From Glycera tridactyla (lineage: Eukaryota), in NCBI GenBank assembly GCA_965644265.1, contig CBFFRO010000099.1, forward strand, positions 1-64,000: 64,000 nucleotides of DNA, in the 5' to 3' direction. The position numbers were made by a program, and so were the translations under genes. Under the pieces are notes generated by a model. It was not told the DNA's origin, searched no databases, and worked only from the letters and a program-made list of their open reading frames with translations. Below are positions 2,650-51,415 of the stretch, one piece after another (positions within the stretch are counted from its first letter, which is position 1; each line of letters starts with the position of its first letter).

Positions 2650-4007
2650 TACATGTATATATCCTGTATGCAGACTTCAAGCGAGGGAGTCAATGACAGA
2701 CACCTGATTTGGCAAGAATGAATATTCGGCAGAATGTGATATGCCAGATCTGTGACAATCTTTCCATACCAATGCCTCTGCCTAGGGATAGAATTTTCAA
2801 TAGCCTTTCGTAGTGTTAGGAATCGGTACCAATTTTGGGAATTGATTAATCAGAATTTATTTCGATTGATTAATCAATTATAATTGATGTTTAGTCAAGT
2901 GTCAAAGAAGACTGATTTGTAGCATGGAGGATGGTGACTGACATGACACGAGAAGTGAGAAGGCATGAATTCATCTGTAAAAAGAGTTAAAAGATGCTGG
3001 AGAGTGAAAGATAGACTAATAAATCTTGAAAAATGATAACGAGATCCAGATTATTCTAGAAAAAATACATTTAATGATGAAATCTGTCCTGCTGAAAATG
3101 AAAGCCAAAAAATCGATTCTGACAAAGTAACATTGATTAGTAGAATCGAAACCAAATTCGATTGATTCAATCGATTTCTGAGCGAAACGTCGCAAGACTT
3201 GCCTTTCGTCAGTGGTCAGAATTTCCCTTACACATTTGAAATAAGTTGTGTAGAGGACTGAGTGTTGAATCCAATTATGTGCTGCCACACACCGCTGACT
3301 CTGTAGTGTATCAAGAGCTGAAATAAAACTAGGTCCCGCTCAACTAAAAAACGATGTTGTTCCATCCATCATACTCCAACTAATTGTGTTGTCAAGAGTT
3401 GTTACAGTATACGAAGTGTTGATGCCAAGAGGATGTTATCACTGGCGATGGCAGAGCAGCCGATGGAAATAAAAATGATGAAATGATGCCTCATATTCAG
3501 TATGGAAATAGGGATTGTTCATCATCATCATCATTAGTGCTATCATCATTATTGTTAACATTAGTTATCATTATGATTATAACAAGTATTTCTGCTTCAG
3601 TCATCCTCGTGAAGGGGGACAGCTTCCGTCGCAGAAATTGATCATTAGTATCATTACCTTTATTATCATTATTACAGGGATGTTATTGCTCCATGGATCT
3701 GAAGATTTCTGGGGTTTTTTGTCACGAGTGCAGCACTCCATGCATGGGGCGGAAAAGAGCAATATGTGCTGATTATTTTGGATTTTAGATCATGAAAATT
3801 TAACCAGAATTGATGGAGATAGAACACAGATTTTGTATGCAGTCATAGTAGCCATGAGTTGGCAGCTGGGGCTTTCCTGGTCAATGAAATCTTGGTGAAA
3901 AGCACCACGGGTCAGGTTTTCGGGGGTTTTGGTTGTGAACGAATTACATCCGTGCTATTACCATTGTAACAGCTGTAATTATAATTTTCATCATTATCAT
4001 CATTTTC

Positions 4008-4900: not shown

Positions 4901-5039
4901 TTACTCAAAAAAAGTCATACACACTATAATGTGTTACCTAAATACAAGTTATAGAAGGTTATGTATGGAACATGTATACATACATCGTCTATTTAGTGAA
5001 TTACATCAGAGAGGGGGGCAGTGAAGACTTCATGAGGTA

Positions 5040-5201
5040 CAGTCAAACCTGCTATAGTGTTATCCTGTCTACAGTGAAAAGAAAAATCTGGCCGGAACGT
5101 TTTTTTTTTTTCACTATAATTGACCTGTATATAGTGAAATCCTGTCTACAGTGAAAAGAAAAGTCTGGCCCGTGACTTTATACTATAAACAGGTTTTACT
5201 G
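5040..5201. mobile_element. TA-target MITE with internal direct repeat
   Basis: CAGTCAAACCTG / CAGGTTTTACTG TIRs, TA flanks; ATCCTGTCTACAGTGAAAAGAAAA occurs twice inside. Confidence 0.85.
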
Positions 5202-5938: not shown

Positions 5939-6064
5939 ATGCACGTGTGGAGCATATCGCGCGGGCGGGGTGGTTCATCGGGATGATGTGCGCCATTCTC
6001 TTCCTCCTCCTCATCCTTCTCATCGTCTGTCTCATCAAACGCAATCGAGGAGGCAAATACCCAG
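5939..6064 (+). CDS. Nrg: L1CAM-family (neuroglian/NrCAM-like) transmembrane exon; 5' boundary uncertain (alternatives 5897, 5918)
   Basis: Encodes (D)[41 protein letters not shown], the GWFIG TM helix and KRxxGGKY juxtamembrane motif of L1 proteins; TACTAAT branch-like site at 5904-5910; CAG acceptor at 5936-5938; phase-1 donor CAG|GTAACG at 6064/6065. Confidence 0.93.
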
Positions 6065-10216: not shown

Positions 10217-12243
10217 ATTGCAATACTAGACTGATACTGGGAATTTTTATGTTTATCATCATGTGGAATTGTATTTGTGTTACTCTGCATGATCATTATC
10301 GTAGGATATATGTTGTACCTTGCTATCCAAACTCGCACATTCACTTTGGCCCTAGACTCCTATGTTTGGATCAGGTGAAATGCGGTGCCCCACACCTCAG
10401 AAATGTGATTGCTCCACAGATCTGCAGATTTCTACATTTATTCGGGGAAATGTTACCTATGATAGAGTAGAGTGTTCATGCTATTGAATACTATGGTTTT
10501 AAGATCCTGAAGTTCTGATCGTAATCTGTCAAGTTGGAGCACAGCATATGCAGATGACTTGAGACATCTGCCATTTCTGTAGTCATACATTGTTCTTAGG
10601 CCATCATCTCTTGTGAAAATAGACTAGCCTGAAGGCCTGATGGAACAAAAATGTTTTATCAGTGCCAAAGCCATTCATCCAAATCACTTTGGATGAAATA
10701 TAGAAATCTTCCACACCTGGTAAATTGAAGGTTTTTCTCCAAAGGGCCTAAATAGCTTCCAGCGGATGAAATATTCCCTGTTTCAAAAACACTTAAATGG
10801 TTTTTTGATTATGTTCTACTTCAAAGAACAGGTGAATAATATTCAAGAAATCCAATGATTTCTGAAAATGTAATTCATACATTTCGATGATGTATCATGA
10901 GACATAGTTCTGTCTAATATTCAAGTGTTTTGGGCATTTCCAACCTTACAGCCATATATTCTTGCTTTTATCACATGGATTAGGAGAGAAATTGTCAAAA
11001 AGTAGTTGTCATCCAGTATCACATGCAATACTCAACACTCGATACTACACTGAAAATGTCACATCCATGTGTTAAAGACCCCAACCGTGAACCTTCAATG
11101 CTCATTGGGTCCATGTGGCCGTTCGTCTGGACATATGGGTTATGATTCAAAATGGTGGCCTACCTCGTAATAATCAAATGTTGAGAGGGTCAAAAAAATC
11201 TGGGCCAGTGGACCCATAGTAGAGGATATTGATGGGCCAAAAGGGCAAAAAGGGGGTCAATATAGCATGAGTCCCCTACCTGAGCGGTCGGAACAATGAT
11301 ATCACACGTGATATCACTTCACCCGCGATCCCAAGAGTGTGATATCATCGATCAGACCGTTCGGGGTGGAGATTCATGCATTCATGCCACACTCAAACTA
11401 CTGTCTTCCTTCCAAATTCTGGTTCTCAGTGTAAAGTGCCTTGACAATAAGCATCCGCCATGTTGGTTTACCTTCCATGCTCACTGGTACCCCATCTAGC
11501 TGCACATGAGTTGATATGATCGACAGAAGCTAGGTTACCAGTCGGCTGGTGAACAGCAAAAATAGTCCGGACAATACTTCCCGGTACGGGAGTATTTCAA
11601 GTGATAATACATACCACTTTAAAACATAGAAAACCACACATGTGTGGTATAATGGCCCGTCAATAATTAGAATGGCACTGATATGACGGAGAAACCCCAG
11701 AGTTGAGAAACTGGAAAGTTGAAATCTCAGGCCGTCTTGAATGTTTGTAGTAACAACTTTTCTTGTAGTGTTGTAGTTTTGTCGTCAGTGATTCATTTTT
11801 ATATCGCTTTCTTTCTCTTGTTTTCTTTCCAGGCCATCCAAAGTGTGAGTGTCCAGCACAATATATGTCTCGTCCTCCATTAAGACTGATGGCCAGCCCT
11901 ATTTTAATTTCTATTCTAATTGCCGTGTGAATCATAATCCGATCCTCCCCCGACCTCTTACAGCTTGTTTGCGGTGTCCTGGATTGCATGCGCATTGATA
12001 GCCATTAAACTGGGCCCAGTATTTGATAAGAGCTGCATTATGTGCACTTTTGATGTCGGTCAGGTTTCAGTTCTGGAACCTTTCACTGCATAATTCCATG
12101 TTTGCCAACTGCCAGTGGATTTAGACAAGCTGCTTCTGTCAAGCTCTTAATTGCATGCAGCTCAGAAGTCAAGTTAACAAGAGTTGTTCAGGGCAAAATT
12201 GGCAGGGAGCATTCATTGTGTGTTGGATTAGTCATACCATCGT

Positions 12244-15785: not shown

Positions 15786-15839
15786 CGAAGACCCAGCCGA
15801 TCAAATGTGGGCGGGTAGATCTAGACCTAACTCATCCGG
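15786..15839 (+). CDS. Candidate 54-nt cassette exon (T)EDPADQMWAGRSRPNSS(G)
   Basis: TGCCTGCTTTTGCTTCAG acceptor and CGG|GTAGGC donor; symmetric phase 2-2, open frame. Confidence 0.5.
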
Positions 15840-18800
15840 GTAGGCACAATTCTCATTTTGTCAGTTTTCAATCCAATTTTTTTTTTACCGACTTATCTTA
15901 GTCCTAGCGCTAAGAGTCTATTTTTGTCGGGGAGGTCAACCCATCACGAAGATCATCAACTTAAAATGGGCTCTTATTCCTCATATTTTTTTTCTTCCAA
16001 CTTATATTTATTATATTTTTATATGAGCACCAATGTGTTGATAGTACATGTGTAGAAATGGTTGACTCTATGACAGTGTCCTCTCTTTAGTGTCTCATCG
16101 CTCAATTAGAAAAAAAAAAATTTATGCTATGTCACTTCTCCTCAATCTTGGGGGTCTTGACTTCCTTGATGGCTTCTGTTTGTTTTTGTTCTCGTTTTTC
16201 TCTGTCCTCAGTTGATGCCTTTCTTACATTGAGCAAACTTTCCTTTTTGTTTCTTTCACTTTTCTCCGATCTTTTTCTCCATACCCTATGTCTTGTATTC
16301 TGTCTTCGGACAAACCTAGAGATAGACTATTTTCACTCGCTCTCTGAATATCTTCATTTTGCGTTTCTCTACCATCAGTTTTGGAGCTGTTAAGGGTCAT
16401 TCCTACTCGATTTCATCCATCAACAGTACAATATTAGCTCGAGTTTTTTTTATTATTTTGAAATATGATAGTGATATAACCCAAGACCTGAGTTTGATTC
16501 ACATTTTTATTTAGTGATAATCATCTTCTTCAGAATCCGTTTTGTGGGGTTTTTCTTCAATTAAACCATTTCTGAAAGTGGCGCGTCATTCCATTTTTAG
16601 CACTGCTGGTATAAAATGACCACTCAATAAATCAATGGCCACAAGTATGCATCCACCAAATGTGCAATCACTCAAGTAAGATTAAAAACTTACAGTAGTA
16701 TTTTGAAAGAGTAGATATTCCATCTAGAAGTTGCCCTACTTTCAGACACAAGCTGTGTTGTTGGGGATGGGTCAAGCACCTCTGCAACTGACCAACATGT
16801 CTGGCTGATGTGGTTTGCCGCATGATCGCCCATGCGATAACCACTAGGTGTCAGTTTGATGAAGGGTTGGTTGAACCATCAGCAGTGTCGATGATTTTGT
16901 CTGAGGGAATTTCAGCACGCTTTTCAGTTGTAACGGTTGCCAACGTTTTGTTATGTTCAGTAACGGAATACAGGTGCCCATTCCTTTGTGTCACATTTAC
17001 GATAAAGAATACTTGATAGGGGATTCAGCCAATGTTTCTTTGTTAGTCGAACTGAACCGTCTGCAGTTCTAGCCTGAATGACAGCTAATCGCCATTGAAA
17101 GATCTACAAATGGTCCCCACTCTTTGTTTCTTGTCACTTATGTTTTGATCTGACTGGCTTCAGGCAATGTTTCAAACCCTCCATATTAGAAGACTTACAG
17201 TAATATTGTTGGTTTTTGTGGGAGCAGTGTTGAACCTGCATTCAGAATTTAGTCCCTCAATACAGGCATTGGTTGGTCATTGATATGTTATCATATCCAT
17301 CGGAAGTATTATAACTACAGATCTTAAAGTTTTGTTGAGGCTCCATTGAGACCCTTCTCTTCGGTTTGATTCTCAGTTATTGTAGACACTGTCAGACAAT
17401 CAAAAGTAGCATGCACATATTTTTTACTCAGATTCATATTGAACTCACATTCCAAGCCATGGTCCACAGTTGATAGAATTGCGCTGTTCATGTTGTCTTG
17501 AGCAAAGTTGTGTGTGCTTTTTACTATGTTGATCATCATGTGACACCCCTGTAAGTTTCAGGCACAGTTGGAAATTTCTCTTTTTCCCAATTTTATGTTT
17601 TGGAAATGACGAAGGACTGTATCATTTGGTTACATCAACTTTAGATAGTGATTGAGGAAAACAAGTATTGGAAGCTCTCAGCTTACTTCGAATGCTTGTA
17701 TCGTTTATTTCACATATTCTGACAAATTTTTGTGGTATTGATATGAGTAATATCCCCATAGCGTGACATTGCTCTTGAGTGGAACCACTGGATGTGAAGA
17801 TGAAGCTATCGAACTTGTCTTATTCATGTGTTGCGTTGACGCAAGATGATTTCGGAATGTAGCATCAGGCGTAAATTTCTTGGTCTGTGGTTCCACTCTG
17901 AAATACAGAACACCTTTAGGATATATCAAACAACTCTGCACGCTGGTGTATTGAGGCTAGAATGGTTCTAAAACATGTCAGAAAACCCCTGTGATCAATT
18001 CCGTTGGTTTTGTCCACAATCGCTGCGTCTTCCCAATCCAGTGGCGATGAAGTTGCGATGATGCAGAGTTTGTCCGAATGAGACGGGTGTCACATGGTGA
18101 AAATGTATTGAAATGTTACTGTATTTGTATGTTGTTGTATTTTTGAGATCAAGTGGTGATCTGCTGGCACTGTACTTCATTGGAGAGTGTAACTTCAACG
18201 TATCAAAATCTGAATTTGGGGCATTATTGTTGGGTCCTAGACGCTACTGGTTTGAACCTCCCCGAACATTTTGAGAAATCATAATTATGTTGGATACTAC
18301 TTCATTTTGCACTTGTCAAGTGAATTAACGACATCTTTCATCTCATGAGACTGTTAGGCCGCAAACATACCAGAATTTGGATCGGAATTCCGATACTTAT
18401 CAGAAATCTGATGAAAGGGGACACACCTTGTCTGTTTTCGAATCAGTATCTCCCAGTCTGAGCTCACATCTGACACACATGTCTGACTCAGTTGTGCCTA
18501 TTGATCAGCGTCCATACCATTGCTCTCGCTTTTACTAAATCGGATGCAGATTTGGTTACGAATTCTGATCCAGACTGGTGCATTCTGGATTGGCTCAAAC
18601 GTAGGAGCAGAGATGCCAACTGCTACAATTTTGGAGTAGCATTTACTCTGTTCAGACCTGAATTCTTGCATTTTACGAGTGATGCTACTCTGAAGAGTCA
18701 GGAATTTTCTTATTATTTCATCGCAAATACTGGCACTGCTAGCCTTTGAAATTGGCACTGCCGCTAGTTTTGTCCGTCAGAGGTCGGCATCTATGTATGA

Positions 18801-19158
18801 GTACAATTCTTTTCTGATGGCTGTCAGAATCCTGATCTGAATTTTGACAGCAAAAAACTGTGAGGTGTTATTGCACCATCAATCTGATGATAAAGATGAG
18901 TCTTGTTGTCAAAGATACTCTGTAGATTGAACATATTTTGGAACTCTCCATGTTCCGTTGCCTCGGGAGATGTAGGGCGTGCTGCAGATTGGCCACCTGG
19001 TCCGATGTTATTGTTTATGTGGTCGTTGCATGAGCTTGTCTAGATGTCACTTATTAGATGAGACATAACTTACTTTGTGTGCATGTTGTGTTTTTGTTTT
19101 ATGTTTGCCTTTGATTGCCGCTGCTCTTCTTGACTGTTGTGCACCGTGAATTCATCAG

Positions 19159-19173
19159 TTATATGCCTCTATT
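19159..19173 (+). CDS. Candidate 15-nt microexon encoding YMPL
   Basis: ~94-nt AG-free T/TG-rich zone with several TGC; CAG acceptor; GTAAGT donor; phase 2-2 in frame; TGCATG at 19371 and 19379. Confidence 0.75.
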
Positions 19174-19781
19174 GTAAGTACATTCTCGGCCTTTGTTATA
19201 ACGCAAGCACATGCTAATTTAGAATTGGGTAGATTTTCCTATACCCAATATAGAATTGGGTGGATGTTTTGTATACCCAAACTACTCTTATGATGTATCC
19301 CGTCTGATACTGCCATTTTTCGAGCCGATTGCTCCGTCCCCTTTTGCTACACCTTTGATTGTATGATGAATGCATGTATGCATGGATAAGCATTTAACCC
19401 AGGGCACTCCTCGTTTGAGTGTGCGCTAGCATGGTGTAATTCCCACGGAAATATACACTGATTCATTGTGGACTAAAATTTTGCCTTGTGTATTTTGATG
19501 TTGTTGGTAGATATGATCATAATTCATGTTACATCCTGTATGAAATCAACACTAATTTTCCATAATTGACTCATGAAATGACTACATTATCCAGGTTTTC
19601 GATTAAAGCATGAGTGTCATTACTCACACAGACTGCATTTTCATTTTTTCATTTTTACGATACAATTGACAATTTGATTTGAGGAGAACAATTTCCAGCA
19701 CTAGTTCAACTTCTTATACATTTGCTTGAGAGAGGGGTTTCTATTTAGGTGAAGATACAACAACTTAGAACTTAGAACATA

Positions 19782-19926
19782 NNNNNNNNNNNNNNNNNNN
19801 NNNNNNNNNNNNNNNNNNNNNNNNNNNNNNNNNNNNNNNNNNNNNNNNNNNNNNNNNNNNNNNNNNNNNNNNNNNNNNNNNNNNNNNNNNNNNNNNNNNN
19901 NNNNNNNNNNNNNNNNNNNNNNNNNN
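19782..19926. other. Assembly gap (145 N)
   Basis: Run of N followed by GT-rich sequence. Confidence 1.
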
Positions 19927-21491
19927 GTGTGTTCATTTGTACATGCAAGTGTCTGCGCATGTATGCTTGTGTATGCATGAGTGTTCCTGTGTCTGGCTGA
20001 ATGTGGGCCTTGCTGTCGTACCGTACCAAAGTGTCCATCATAACCATCCCATCCGTGTATTGTGCATTCCCGAATATACAGTCGTTGAAATTTCAGTTCT
20101 TATCATCAGTTGCCCACATATTTTTTTTTCTCAAAAAACGCACATCATTTTGACTCCTCATCGGGTTCTCCCTAGATTGGTAGATTTCCGCTCATAGACT
20201 TTCGATAAAAATCCCGTAGTGTTTCCAGCAGCTATCGTTACCACTTCTGTTGGATTAACATCACCCTCTAATATTCTCACTCCCTGCCATTTTTCTATCA
20301 AATTTTGTCAGATTCCATGTTATAGTTATGGAGTATTGCCCATTTTTTTCCCCATTATACACCACGGAACAATACAAAGTGTTTTACATTTTTGTGACCT
20401 CTCATAGATATGCGATGGGCAAGACTACAGGAAGAGATCCGAATTGATCTGCGATTCATAACGGACTATTCCATCAAGCAATATGAGGGGAGGGAGGGGT
20501 CAGGGTTGGAACAATTCTAACCCCCTACCCTATATCCTGAATTATTTGGCACCCCTGATTCAGAATTTGCATTCACCGACCGAGCCAACTGTTGATATCT
20601 TTGCATTACAGTGGTCAATGATCTCCTTCCCCAATTCTGAATGCGATGGATTGACATCAATCTCCTAGCCCCGAATCCTGATTTTTGCAGCACCCTCAGA
20701 TTAAATCTGTTGGTAACTCCCCAGATTTCGGATCGGCTGTCAACTGCCACCCGCACATTTTCAAATAGAATAGCCCTGGCATAGATCACCATTCACCGAT
20801 TCCATCTACCTGTGCGAGCTGCTCGCTAATTTCAAAACCATGAATGTAAACAACCAATCATGTCACAAACATGATTATAAATATAGATCAAATATTTATG
20901 GTCCACAATTTGAAGTGAAATACGAAGCAAATCCATTCAAGAATGCCTTGCTTCAGTTTCCATTCTAGTTATTTCATCCCTTAACTACCTCAAAGCCTAA
21001 GTTTACGATCCTGGCTTCATACAACATTTTTTTGTCTCCGGACAATTGGTCTGGAAATCATGAACACTTTTTGTTGGATATGAAGTGGCTGACCAATCCC
21101 CAAAGAGCACTTTTTGAGATGCTATGCTGTGAAAGATTCATTGGACGATAATGCACAGTGGATAAGCCAATGGCCAAGTCCCTACCTGCTTGCTGCAGAC
21201 TGAAAAGTCATCCCGCAGCAAAAGTTCTTCTGGATGGCTAGAGCTGGAGCTATTGAAGTCGCCTTTCTGTGGTGTTTAGATGTTGCAGACTAGCTTGTTC
21301 AGCTTCATATCCCACAGAAAAAGAAGCCCAGGATAGTATACTCAGGCATTAAATTTAGCGTCATATCATTTTTTTTGCGCTGAATATGCTGCTGTTGAAT
21401 GAGATAACGCGCTGCTCTGCTGATTTTGTTTGCATTGTGTTTTTGTGTCACCATAATTTTGTTGACATTTTTTGTACATCTTTGTTTTTAG

Positions 21492-21512
21492 GCCCTACAT
21501 GGAACTAAAGAG
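21492..21512 (+). CDS. Candidate 21-nt microexon encoding PYMELK(S)
   Basis: ~86-nt AG-free T-rich zone; TTTTTAG acceptor; GAG|GTAAAA donor; phase 2-2 in frame. Confidence 0.75.
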
Positions 21513-21567
21513 GTAAAACTCATGCTCCTGTTTTTGATTGAACTAGCAGTTGTCCCTACCTTCCTGC

Positions 21568-21625
21568 TGGTGGTGGTGGCAGCTCTGGTGGAGGTGGTGG
21601 TGGTGGTGTTAGTGATGGTGGTGGT
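21568..21625. repeat. (GGT)n-rich tract
   Basis: Directly visible. Confidence 0.9.
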
Positions 21626-22227
21626 TTGCTTTTATTTCCTCCTGTTTGCTTGACCTTAGTTTGACTACCAATTTTGTAGAGGTTGCTGTTGTTTTGTACC
21701 AAGACTCCTACTAATTCAAACCAATCAAAATTGAGCCTGTCACTCAAGACGGCTGTGAACAGGCCCAAGACGATGAGAGGGTTTTCTGTTTTACACATCT
21801 AGATATTGGATTCACACATCTAGATATGGGATCTAGAAATCAAATTCCTATTCCAAGTGGACAGTTTTCAGTCAGACTGGAGCCAAGATGTTTTTGAATT
21901 TCATTCTATCTTCCATCAGTACCAGTGACAAGCAAGGAGTCACAATCGTACTTTTTCCTGTGGCCTGAATATAATACCAAGGTTGGAGATCATTTGCAGC
22001 CAATCTATGGTGGCAAAGTTTCAAGCATTTATGAAAACTCTCGATTATTCTGCTTTGAGGTTATGCTGTCATGTCTGCTCCTCTATAAAGTGTCAAACCC
22101 ATTTGAAATGTTACTATTATTCTCTCGCTTATCTGGCATGATATCGAGATAAATCAAGTAATGGAAACTCAGGATCTATGTATTAGAACCTGAGAGTCAG
22201 AGGTTGCCTTCTGATTTCCCAATCTGA

Positions 22228-27596: not shown

Positions 27597-27804
27597 GGCC
27601 TATTTGACTGGACAGTTTCCGTTGAGTGGGCATTGCAGGACTTAACGGTTGTAGCCCAGCCGGATGGGTTTTGTTTAACGAGTTCAACGTAGTCAAATTA
27701 CCGTTGAGATTCGTATGCAATGAAAAAGTGTTGGGTGCCACCTGAATACGAAAAGTGCTCAACAGCCTGGCCGTACTCAACGAAACTGACCAGTCTAATA
27801 GGCC
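27597..27804. mobile_element. MITE with ~30-bp TIR and TA TSD at the left edge of the tandem array
   Basis: GGCCTATTTGACTGGACAGTTTCCGTTGAGT versus reverse complement of right end GGCCTATTAGACTGGTCAGTTTCGTTGAGT; TA on both sides. Confidence 0.9.
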
Positions 27805-28214: not shown

Positions 28215-28437
28215 TGATGAGCCTGACTTCAAGAAGAGTCAAGGGTCCGTGGAGAGTGGTGGCCTGGGATCAATGGGCGGAAGCGACGAAGACAGTATGG
28301 CCGATTACGACACGGAGGTGGACCCGGGTAAGTTCAACGAGGACGGGTCCTTTATTGGCCAGTACGGCGGCAAGACGAAGAAAGAAGAGAAAGAGCCCGA
28401 TGCCGCCTCCCCGTCTGCACTCTCCACTTTTGTATAA
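28215..28437 (+). CDS. Nrg: L1CAM-family terminal coding exon, copy 1
   Basis: GTGTTTTCAG acceptor; phase 2 matches exon 7522-7609; encodes (T)DEPDFKKSQGSVESGGLGSMGGSDEDSMADYDTEVDPGKFNEDGSFIGQYGGKTKKEEKEPDAASPSALSTFV*, with DS(M)ADY and FNEDGSFIGQY L1 signatures and T-F-V PDZ ligand. Confidence 0.97.
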
Positions 28438-39626: not shown

Positions 39627-39849
39627 TGATGAGCCCGACTTCAAGAAGAGTCAAGGGTCCGTGGAGAGTGGTGGCCTGGGATCAATGGGCGGAAGCGACG
39701 AAGACAGTATGGCCGATTACGACACGGAGGTGGACCCGGGTAAGTTCAATGAGGACGGGTCCTTTATTGGCCAGTACGGTGGCAAGACGAAGAAAGAAGA
39801 GAAAGAGCCCGATGCCGCCTCCCCGTCTGCACTCTCCACTTTTGTATAA
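39627..39849 (+). CDS. Nrg: Duplicated terminal exon, copy 2 (intact; protein identical to copy 1)
   Basis: Acceptor intact; three synonymous differences from copy 1; usage unknown. Confidence 0.8.
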
Positions 39850-51192: not shown

Positions 51193-51415
51193 TGATGAGC
51201 CCGACTTCAAGAAGAGTCAAGGGTCCATGGAGAGTGGTGGCCTGGGATCAATGGGCGGAAGCGATGAAGACAGTATGGCCGATTACGACACGGAAGTGGA
51301 CCCGGGTAAGTTCAACGAGGACGGGTCCTTTATTGGCCAGTACGGCGGCAAGACGAAGAAAGAAGAGAAAGAGCCCGATGCCGCCTCCCTGTCTGCACTC
51401 TCCACTTTTGTATAA
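51193..51415 (+). CDS. Nrg: Duplicated terminal exon, copy 3 (intact; V>M and P>L relative to copy 1)
   Basis: Acceptor and stop intact; GTG>ATG and CCG>CTG plus three synonymous differences from copy 1. Confidence 0.8.

Follow-up and report, generated by a model that had tools for sequence, protein, structure and literature searches.

One conserved tyrosine-bearing microexon in the cytoplasmic tail of an annelid L1-type adhesion gene, a probable counterpart of the vertebrate RSLE switch

The RSLE mini-exon of vertebrate L1, found also in NrCAM and neurofascin, is the textbook example of a microexon, neuronal in its use, that acts as a switch for the endocytic sorting of an adhesion molecule. 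To our knowledge it has been treated as a vertebrate-only feature, a point that the papers cited below neither confirm nor contradict. We analysed a stretch of 64,000 nucleotides (nt) from Glycera tridactyla (contig CBFFRO010000099.1 of assembly GCA_965644265.1, positions 1 to 64,000 of the forward strand), called the window in what follows. An annelid adhesion gene of the L1/neuroglian type has its 3′ end on the plus strand of the window, and the phase-2 intron between the exon ending just after GEY (the GEY exon) and the terminal coding exon, which encodes FIGQY, holds one conserved microexon, here called C. In vertebrates, RSLE is an alternatively spliced exon used only in neurons (PMC2956685; PMC2173803). 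The Y1176RSL of L1 binds AP-2, and CKII has a site in YRSLESDNEE at Ser1181, five residues past the Tyr (PMC2956685); phosphorylation of that Tyr by Src blocks AP-2 binding (PMC2956685; PMC2173803).

We think it probable that C is a regulated tail switch resembling RSLE. Each is a very short, frame-preserving tail cassette (at most 30 nt) in the intron that comes right after the GEY exon and before a stretch of Ser, Asp and acidic residues. Inclusion of RSLE creates a YxxL motif five residues before a Ser, as inclusion of C would, and YRSLESDNEE aligns with YMELKSDEPD without a gap. Like RSLE, a cassette at this junction is alternatively spliced in at least one other annelid. The two also differ: the annelid exon is 21-36 nt long against 12 for RSLE; its Tyr is supplied by the microexon itself and not by the Tyr of GEY, and an extra TRT after GEY is kept; and two annelid lineages have lost YxxL or have it displaced. 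Annelid GEYTRTDEPD can be aligned with GEYRPRESPDE of amphioxus and GEYKGKDSPDA of Saccoglossus, so TRT is ancestral exon sequence and the annelid cassette comes in addition to it, which leaves simple homology with RSLE uncertain.

An earlier note on this DNA had proposed that the intron holds three such cassettes (A, B and C) forming a combinatorial code for up to eight tails, and had set them beside the vertebrate switch. Their position in the tail is indeed equivalent to that of the RSLE exon. The code of eight tails finds no support; there remains one annelid counterpart, an analogue, of the RSLE switch. The three cassettes, and the assembly gap that falls among them, are as follows, with slashes at the exon borders:

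15786..15839, plus strand: candidate cassette A, 54 nt, EDPADQMWAGRSRPNSS; ttttgcttcag/C GAA GAC ... TCC GG/gtaggc; good splice-like flanks, in frame
19159..19173, plus strand: candidate cassette B, 15 nt, YMPL; attcatcag/T TAT ATG CCT CTA TT/gtaagt
19782..19926, no strand: assembly gap (N) within the intron, after B and before C, abutted by no exon
21492..21512, plus strand: cassette C, 21 nt, (T)PYMELK(S); tgtttttag/G CCC TAC ATG GAA CTA AAG AG/gtaaaa

All three cassettes are present in the intron in phase 2-2: each has AG/GT boundaries, its first base finishes a codon and its last two bases begin the following one. We built and translated the eight inclusion combinations, and every one is in frame with the natural stop only. 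Full inclusion gives GEYTRT-EDPADQMWAGRSRPNSSG-YMPLL-PYMELKS-DEPDFKK, just as the note had it; when B is used without C, the final residue of B becomes F (YMPLF). As an observation, then, the cassettes, their splice sites and their frame are confirmed. The gap lies 609 nt past the B donor and 1,566 nt ahead of the C acceptor, and because it is intronic and far from both, the frame argument is independent of it. The GEY exon, C and the terminal exon are collinear across the gap with their counterparts in four further annelid loci, and this speaks against a misjoin. A further small exon could be hidden within the gap.

With the terminal exon as query, annelid proteins were retrieved, and these led to orthologous loci. 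One of them (L001) is from Lamellibrachia satsuma; L003-L006 are called annelid solely from similarity to Lamellibrachia and Capitella. The part of the window from 5.7 to 29 kb was compared by word-7 blastn with four loci (L001, L003, L004 and L005), and the only collinear matches other than simple repeats were the transmembrane (TM) exon (in two loci), the GEY exon (in three), C and the terminal exon. C matched L004 at 79.7% over 64 nt (E=1.4e-6). In all four loci its counterpart is placed between the same two exons and has the same splice sites:

L001 (Lamellibrachia satsuma), 3070-3090: C counterpart, 21 nt, same AG/GTAAA boundaries, PYKELP
L003, 2841-2861: C counterpart, 21 nt, same AG/GTAAA boundaries, PYKELP
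L004 (GCA_013332975.1), 5038-5058: C counterpart, 21 nt, same AG/GTAAA boundaries, PYMELK
L005, 9284-9304: C counterpart, 21 nt, same AG/GTAAA boundaries, SYMDAK

In the five-way alignment the invariant columns are mostly the acceptor AG, the exon core and the GTAAA, while the flanks are unaligned. Within the exon the close pairs differ at two positions (window and L004) or one (L001 and L003), and all of these differences are synonymous, which is the signature of a coding exon. This sequence comparison marks C as a genuine microexon, with conservation in four annelid loci beyond the window.

Some features of the surrounding intron may be recorded here. About 25-90 nt 3′ of the microexon there are runs of G-rich triplets, (GGT)n or (GGA)n, such as ctggtggtggtgg, at 21560-21626 in the window, 3176-3990 in L001, 5085-5115 in L004 and about 2950-2990 in L003. 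Counts of GG[TA] in the 200-nt flanks are higher downstream (5-14) than upstream (1-5) in all five species. These downstream runs may be an intronic splicing enhancer. TGC motifs occur 55-120 nt upstream of C and at -19 to -17 of B, and are suggestive only as regards SRRM/eMIC dependence. In the siboglinid-like locus L003, the 3′ end of the GEY exon (GGFGEYTRT with its donor) is duplicated locally at 2117-2178, the copies being 38 nt apart.

Alternative use of the junction was traced in transcript-derived proteins. The tail of P0034, a lophotrochozoan sequence of this kind, was used as a query and led to full-length annelid proteins on short intron-free contigs, which we read as mRNAs. Five tails (Capitella P0240, P0241, P0242, P0243 and P0164) are of the skipped form, in which GEYT[RK]T or GEYNKT runs straight into [DE][EDP]P, and this form is found in a Lamellibrachia gene model as well. 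The tails of P0253 and P0298 carry an insert at the junction of C and read GEYTRT-PYMPLDSTPPKS-DQPEYKK. Four JGI sequences (P0299-P0302) in the 90% cluster of P0241 also carry one, and read GEYTRT-PRMELKYS-EEPDPHKK. P0241 (skipped) and P0301 (included) differ by 2 substitutions in 1,251 residues and by a single eight-residue indel, PRMELKYS, placed exactly at GEYTRT/EEPD. Such near-identity with a lone indel shows that at least one annelid species splices a cassette alternatively at precisely this point. Depending on the lineage, the cassette at the junction is 21, 24 or 36 nt long. A scan of metagenomes for the spliced junction of C with the terminal exon gave one match, an unrelated open reading frame.

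If C were instead a constitutive small exon in Glycera tridactyla, overlooked by gene predictors, there would be no switch. The splice sites of C are strong and are conserved across species, and gene models can omit the exon: the Lamellibrachia model (P0007), a prediction that could have overlooked an exon of 21 nt, skips the C-type exon though its contig holds it, and the Capitella model is also without it. Predictors are not the source of all skipped forms, however, as five skipped tails in four clusters (P0241, P0242, P0243, P0164 and P0034) are on intron-free contigs of 4.3-8.3 kb that we read as mRNAs, and a single gene yields both P0241, the skipped form, and P0301, the included one. We hold constitutive use to be improbable and prefer a regulated C.

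By analogy with these annelids, C would be a regulated cassette in Glycera tridactyla too. Skipping would give the tail GEYTRT-DEPDFKK, and inclusion the tail GEYTRT-PYMELKS-DEPDFKK, in which YMEL, a YxxL motif, would stand five residues ahead of the cluster of Ser, Asp and acidic residues. By analogy with RSLE, inclusion may then switch a tyrosine-dependent interaction of the tail, which we expect to be disordered, beside a phosphorylatable Ser and acidic cluster, the candidates being endocytic sorting of the AP-2 type, docking at phosphotyrosine and the binding of ERM proteins. The motif takes the form YMEL in the window and L004, YKEL in L001 and L003 and YMPL in P0253.

Several points weigh against such a switch. 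The tyrosine motif put forward in the note is not a general feature, since two species have SYMDAK or PRMELKY instead: L005 has YMDA, and the P0301 cluster has PRMELKY-SEE, with the Tyr shifted. With YxxL missing from two lineages, AP-2-type sorting may not be the conserved function, which may instead be phosphotyrosine docking or another. The alternative inclusion that we propose for Glycera tridactyla is drawn from the transcripts of another annelid. A C-like exon is unrecognisable in L006, and it is absent from Dimorphilus, where the intron is about 70 nt long.

We took a census of phase-compatible AG...GT cassettes of 9-60 nt in the intron (7610-28214), and ranked the 639 found by a crude splice-site score. 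A came 2nd, C 3rd and B 38th. The top score belonged to a 12-nt cassette at 11833-11844 (ttctttccag/GCCATCCAAAGT/gtgagt, xPSKx), which is without counterpart in the other annelid loci and was set aside. In Markov-shuffled introns, the number expected per intron is 0.32 for cassettes that equal A in score and 1.15 for YxxL-containing cassettes at the score of B; because of these chance expectations, splice signals alone are no proof for A or B. Cassettes with YM.L and a splice score of at least 3.0, about the level of B, are expected at about 0.06 per Markov-shuffled intron. Over all six strand and phase combinations of the window, C is the sole YM.L cassette counted, B being at the threshold and uncounted. 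Set against chance, C exceeds expectation by its conservation, B is borderline and A does not exceed it.

No A-like insert was present in the annelid transcript-derived tails examined, and neither A nor B had a match in the four loci compared by word-7 blastn; a motif scan of five loci (L001 and L003-L006) gave no B-like exon, and among the genomes compared B is unique to this one. A is unsupported, most likely an open stretch arisen by chance between splice-like flanks. The donor of B is strong (TT/gtaagt), the acceptor weak (score -3.1), and the four residues YMPL of B recur in the transcribed insert PYMPLDSTPPKS of another annelid (P0253). We tried B as a duplicate of C, but local alignment of their flanks was no better than chance, 15% of random windows scoring as high. 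That B is real is doubtful, without being far-fetched. Of the microexon cassettes in the note, then, C stands, being conserved in four loci and having its junction cassette alternatively included in annelid transcripts; B earns some credit from the rarity of YM.L and the YMPL of the other annelid, and A none.

These results bear on the code in which A, B and C would all be real and would combine into as many as eight tails carrying no, one or two tyrosine motifs. It has in its favour that all three are in phase 2-2, with eight combinations in frame, and that A and C rank 2nd and 3rd of 639. The missing blastn matches and B-like exons (L006 included), the want of A-like inserts in the transcript-derived tails and a score for A that is only mildly unusual, at the chance rates given above, make us consider it most improbable. 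A tentative possibility is a system of two cassettes, in which B would be a second tyrosine microexon, a copy peculiar to this lineage, so that tails would have 0, 1 or 2 YxxL motifs, and A would be noise. The rarity of YM.L at this score, the standing of C as the sole such cassette counted in the window, the shared YMPL and the strong donor of B with its upstream TGC speak for it; the five other annelid loci without a B-like exon, the weak acceptor, the chance-level similarity of the flanks to those of C and the position of B exactly at the threshold of a count in which it is itself left out speak against it. With B and C both included, YMPL and YMEL would be separated by LP only. This spacing of 2 residues, against 6-8 between the two YxxL/I motifs of an immunoreceptor tyrosine-based activation motif, rules such a motif out, and the note had rightly called it too short. 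A single switch at C remains the reading that we favour.

Outside the annelids, the intron position and its phase 2 are common to annelids and the hemichordate Saccoglossus. No cassette was present at the GEY junction in annotated amphioxus (P0018 cluster), hemichordate (P0013 and P0026), bivalve (Ruditapes isoforms X1 and X2) and sampled arthropod tails, nor in gastropod and nemertean tails, with one isoform each. Cephalopod neuroglian has an annotated KKK cassette at the same junction, DSK-N-DENG against DSK-KKKS-DENG (Octopus bimaculoides XP_052824013 and XP_014787108; P0015 and P0102). It is like the annelid exon in that the change of N to S implies a split phase-2 codon, in ending with K-S and in preceding D-E-N; it is unlike it in being 9 nt long, as deduced from proteins alone, and without a tyrosine. 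A cephalopod-like transcript from Logan (P0259) has the included KKKS form. Arthropod neuroglian of the Nrg167/Nrg180 type resembles the annelid gene in having an L1-type tail diversified by alternative splicing. There the swap is between terminal exons around FIGQY (such as TGRFTEDGSFIGQYG and TEGMNEDGSFIG[LQ]YG), and the sampled isoforms lack a microexon at the GEY junction. In a protein search with the Scolopendra tail the best 120 matches were all arthropod, with no annelids among the matches listed.

The annelid, cephalopod and vertebrate cassettes share the junction and the S-D-acidic start of the next exon; phase 2 is seen in annelids and, for Octopus, deduced from the change of N to S. 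One could suppose that the intron after GEY is an ancient bilaterian microexon slot of the L1 family, and that the annelid PYMELK-type, cephalopod KKK and vertebrate RSLE exons descend from one ancestral cassette. We rate this as unlikely; if true, the shared slot would be one of very few microexons common to protostomes and vertebrates. Fly and mammalian microexon programmes have almost no overlap, with only four exons in equivalent positions (PMC8797185). The annelid exon and the cephalopod cassette at the equivalent intron would reflect either convergence, to a striking degree, upon one regulatory solution or the sharing of an old exon. With either origin they would offer a tractable invertebrate model for the tuning of L1 trafficking by microexons, for example in Platynereis or Capitella once a search of those genomes for the exon had been made. 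We found no paper on an invertebrate L1 tail microexon in a literature search of incomplete coverage, which is no proof of absence.

In the equivalent phase-2 intron of Saccoglossus kowalevskii (L011, 16408-16431) there is a 24-nt candidate, gcttttgtag/ACCGTACCAAGTTGTTAATATTTT/gtaaaagc (PYQVVNI). It has in common with the annelid exon the ttttgtag acceptor, the P-Y start and the gtaaaa donor, and it contains a YxxV motif; the likeness could be due to chance.

The exons of the gene in the window, other than the cassettes, are as follows:

5941..6064, plus strand: TM/juxtamembrane exon, 3′ part; donor G/gtaacg; blastn to L004 81% over 111 nt, E=2e-23; also matched in L005
7522..7609, plus strand: GEY exon, 88 nt; (V)YEKEKLRAQDPNYPNRDDEEGGFGEYTR plus AC; end in phase 2
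28215..28437, plus strand: terminal coding exon, copy 1; (T/S)DEPDFKK...FNEDGSFIGQY...SPSALSTFV-stop; start T GAT GAG CCT; Pfam Bravo_FIGEY match
39627..39849, plus strand: terminal exon, copy 2 (tandem repeat); compared peptide segments match copy 1
51193..51415, plus strand: terminal exon, copy 3 (tandem repeat); V to M, and P to L within the otherwise conserved SPSALSTFV

The GEY exon ends GAA TAC ACG AGA AC/gtaagt, AC being two bases of the split codon, and an exon with the same GEYTRT/gtaag ending is present in L001, L003 and L004 and in annelid open reading frame fragments P0094-P0098. The landmarks of an L1-family tail come in order: KRNRGGKYP at 6037-6063, GFGEY at about 7590 and FNEDGSFIGQY at 28351. 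The translated terminal exon scores 46.1 bits (E=1.1e-11) with Bravo_FIGEY (PF13882), for which the Pfam gathering cut-off is 23.8, and relatives that share the tail (P0240, P0241 and P0301) carry Pfam Ig and fn3 domains. The nearest relatives are annelid, among them the Lamellibrachia satsuma model and Capitella teleta. These sequence features support the assignment of the gene to the L1 cell adhesion molecule family. At JGI the annelid L1-type proteins P0164 and P0299-P0301 are labelled "receptor-type tyrosine-protein phosphatase zeta"; to judge by tail and Pfam domains, they are L1/neuroglian.

The three copies of the FIGQY terminal exon belong to a tandem repeat of about 11.5 kb, at 27640 to about 62000 of the window, in which the exon and its downstream sequence occur three times, the copies being 97.5-98.7% identical. 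The triplication may be a real segmental duplication, providing three alternative last exons, or an artefact of assembly or haplotypes. Upstream of the TM exon there is another assembly gap (157 N, at 1483-1639). P0253 and P0298, from the same annelid gene, differ in the membrane-proximal ectodomain by an alternative segment of 13 residues (VPTPIPGVIVGER).

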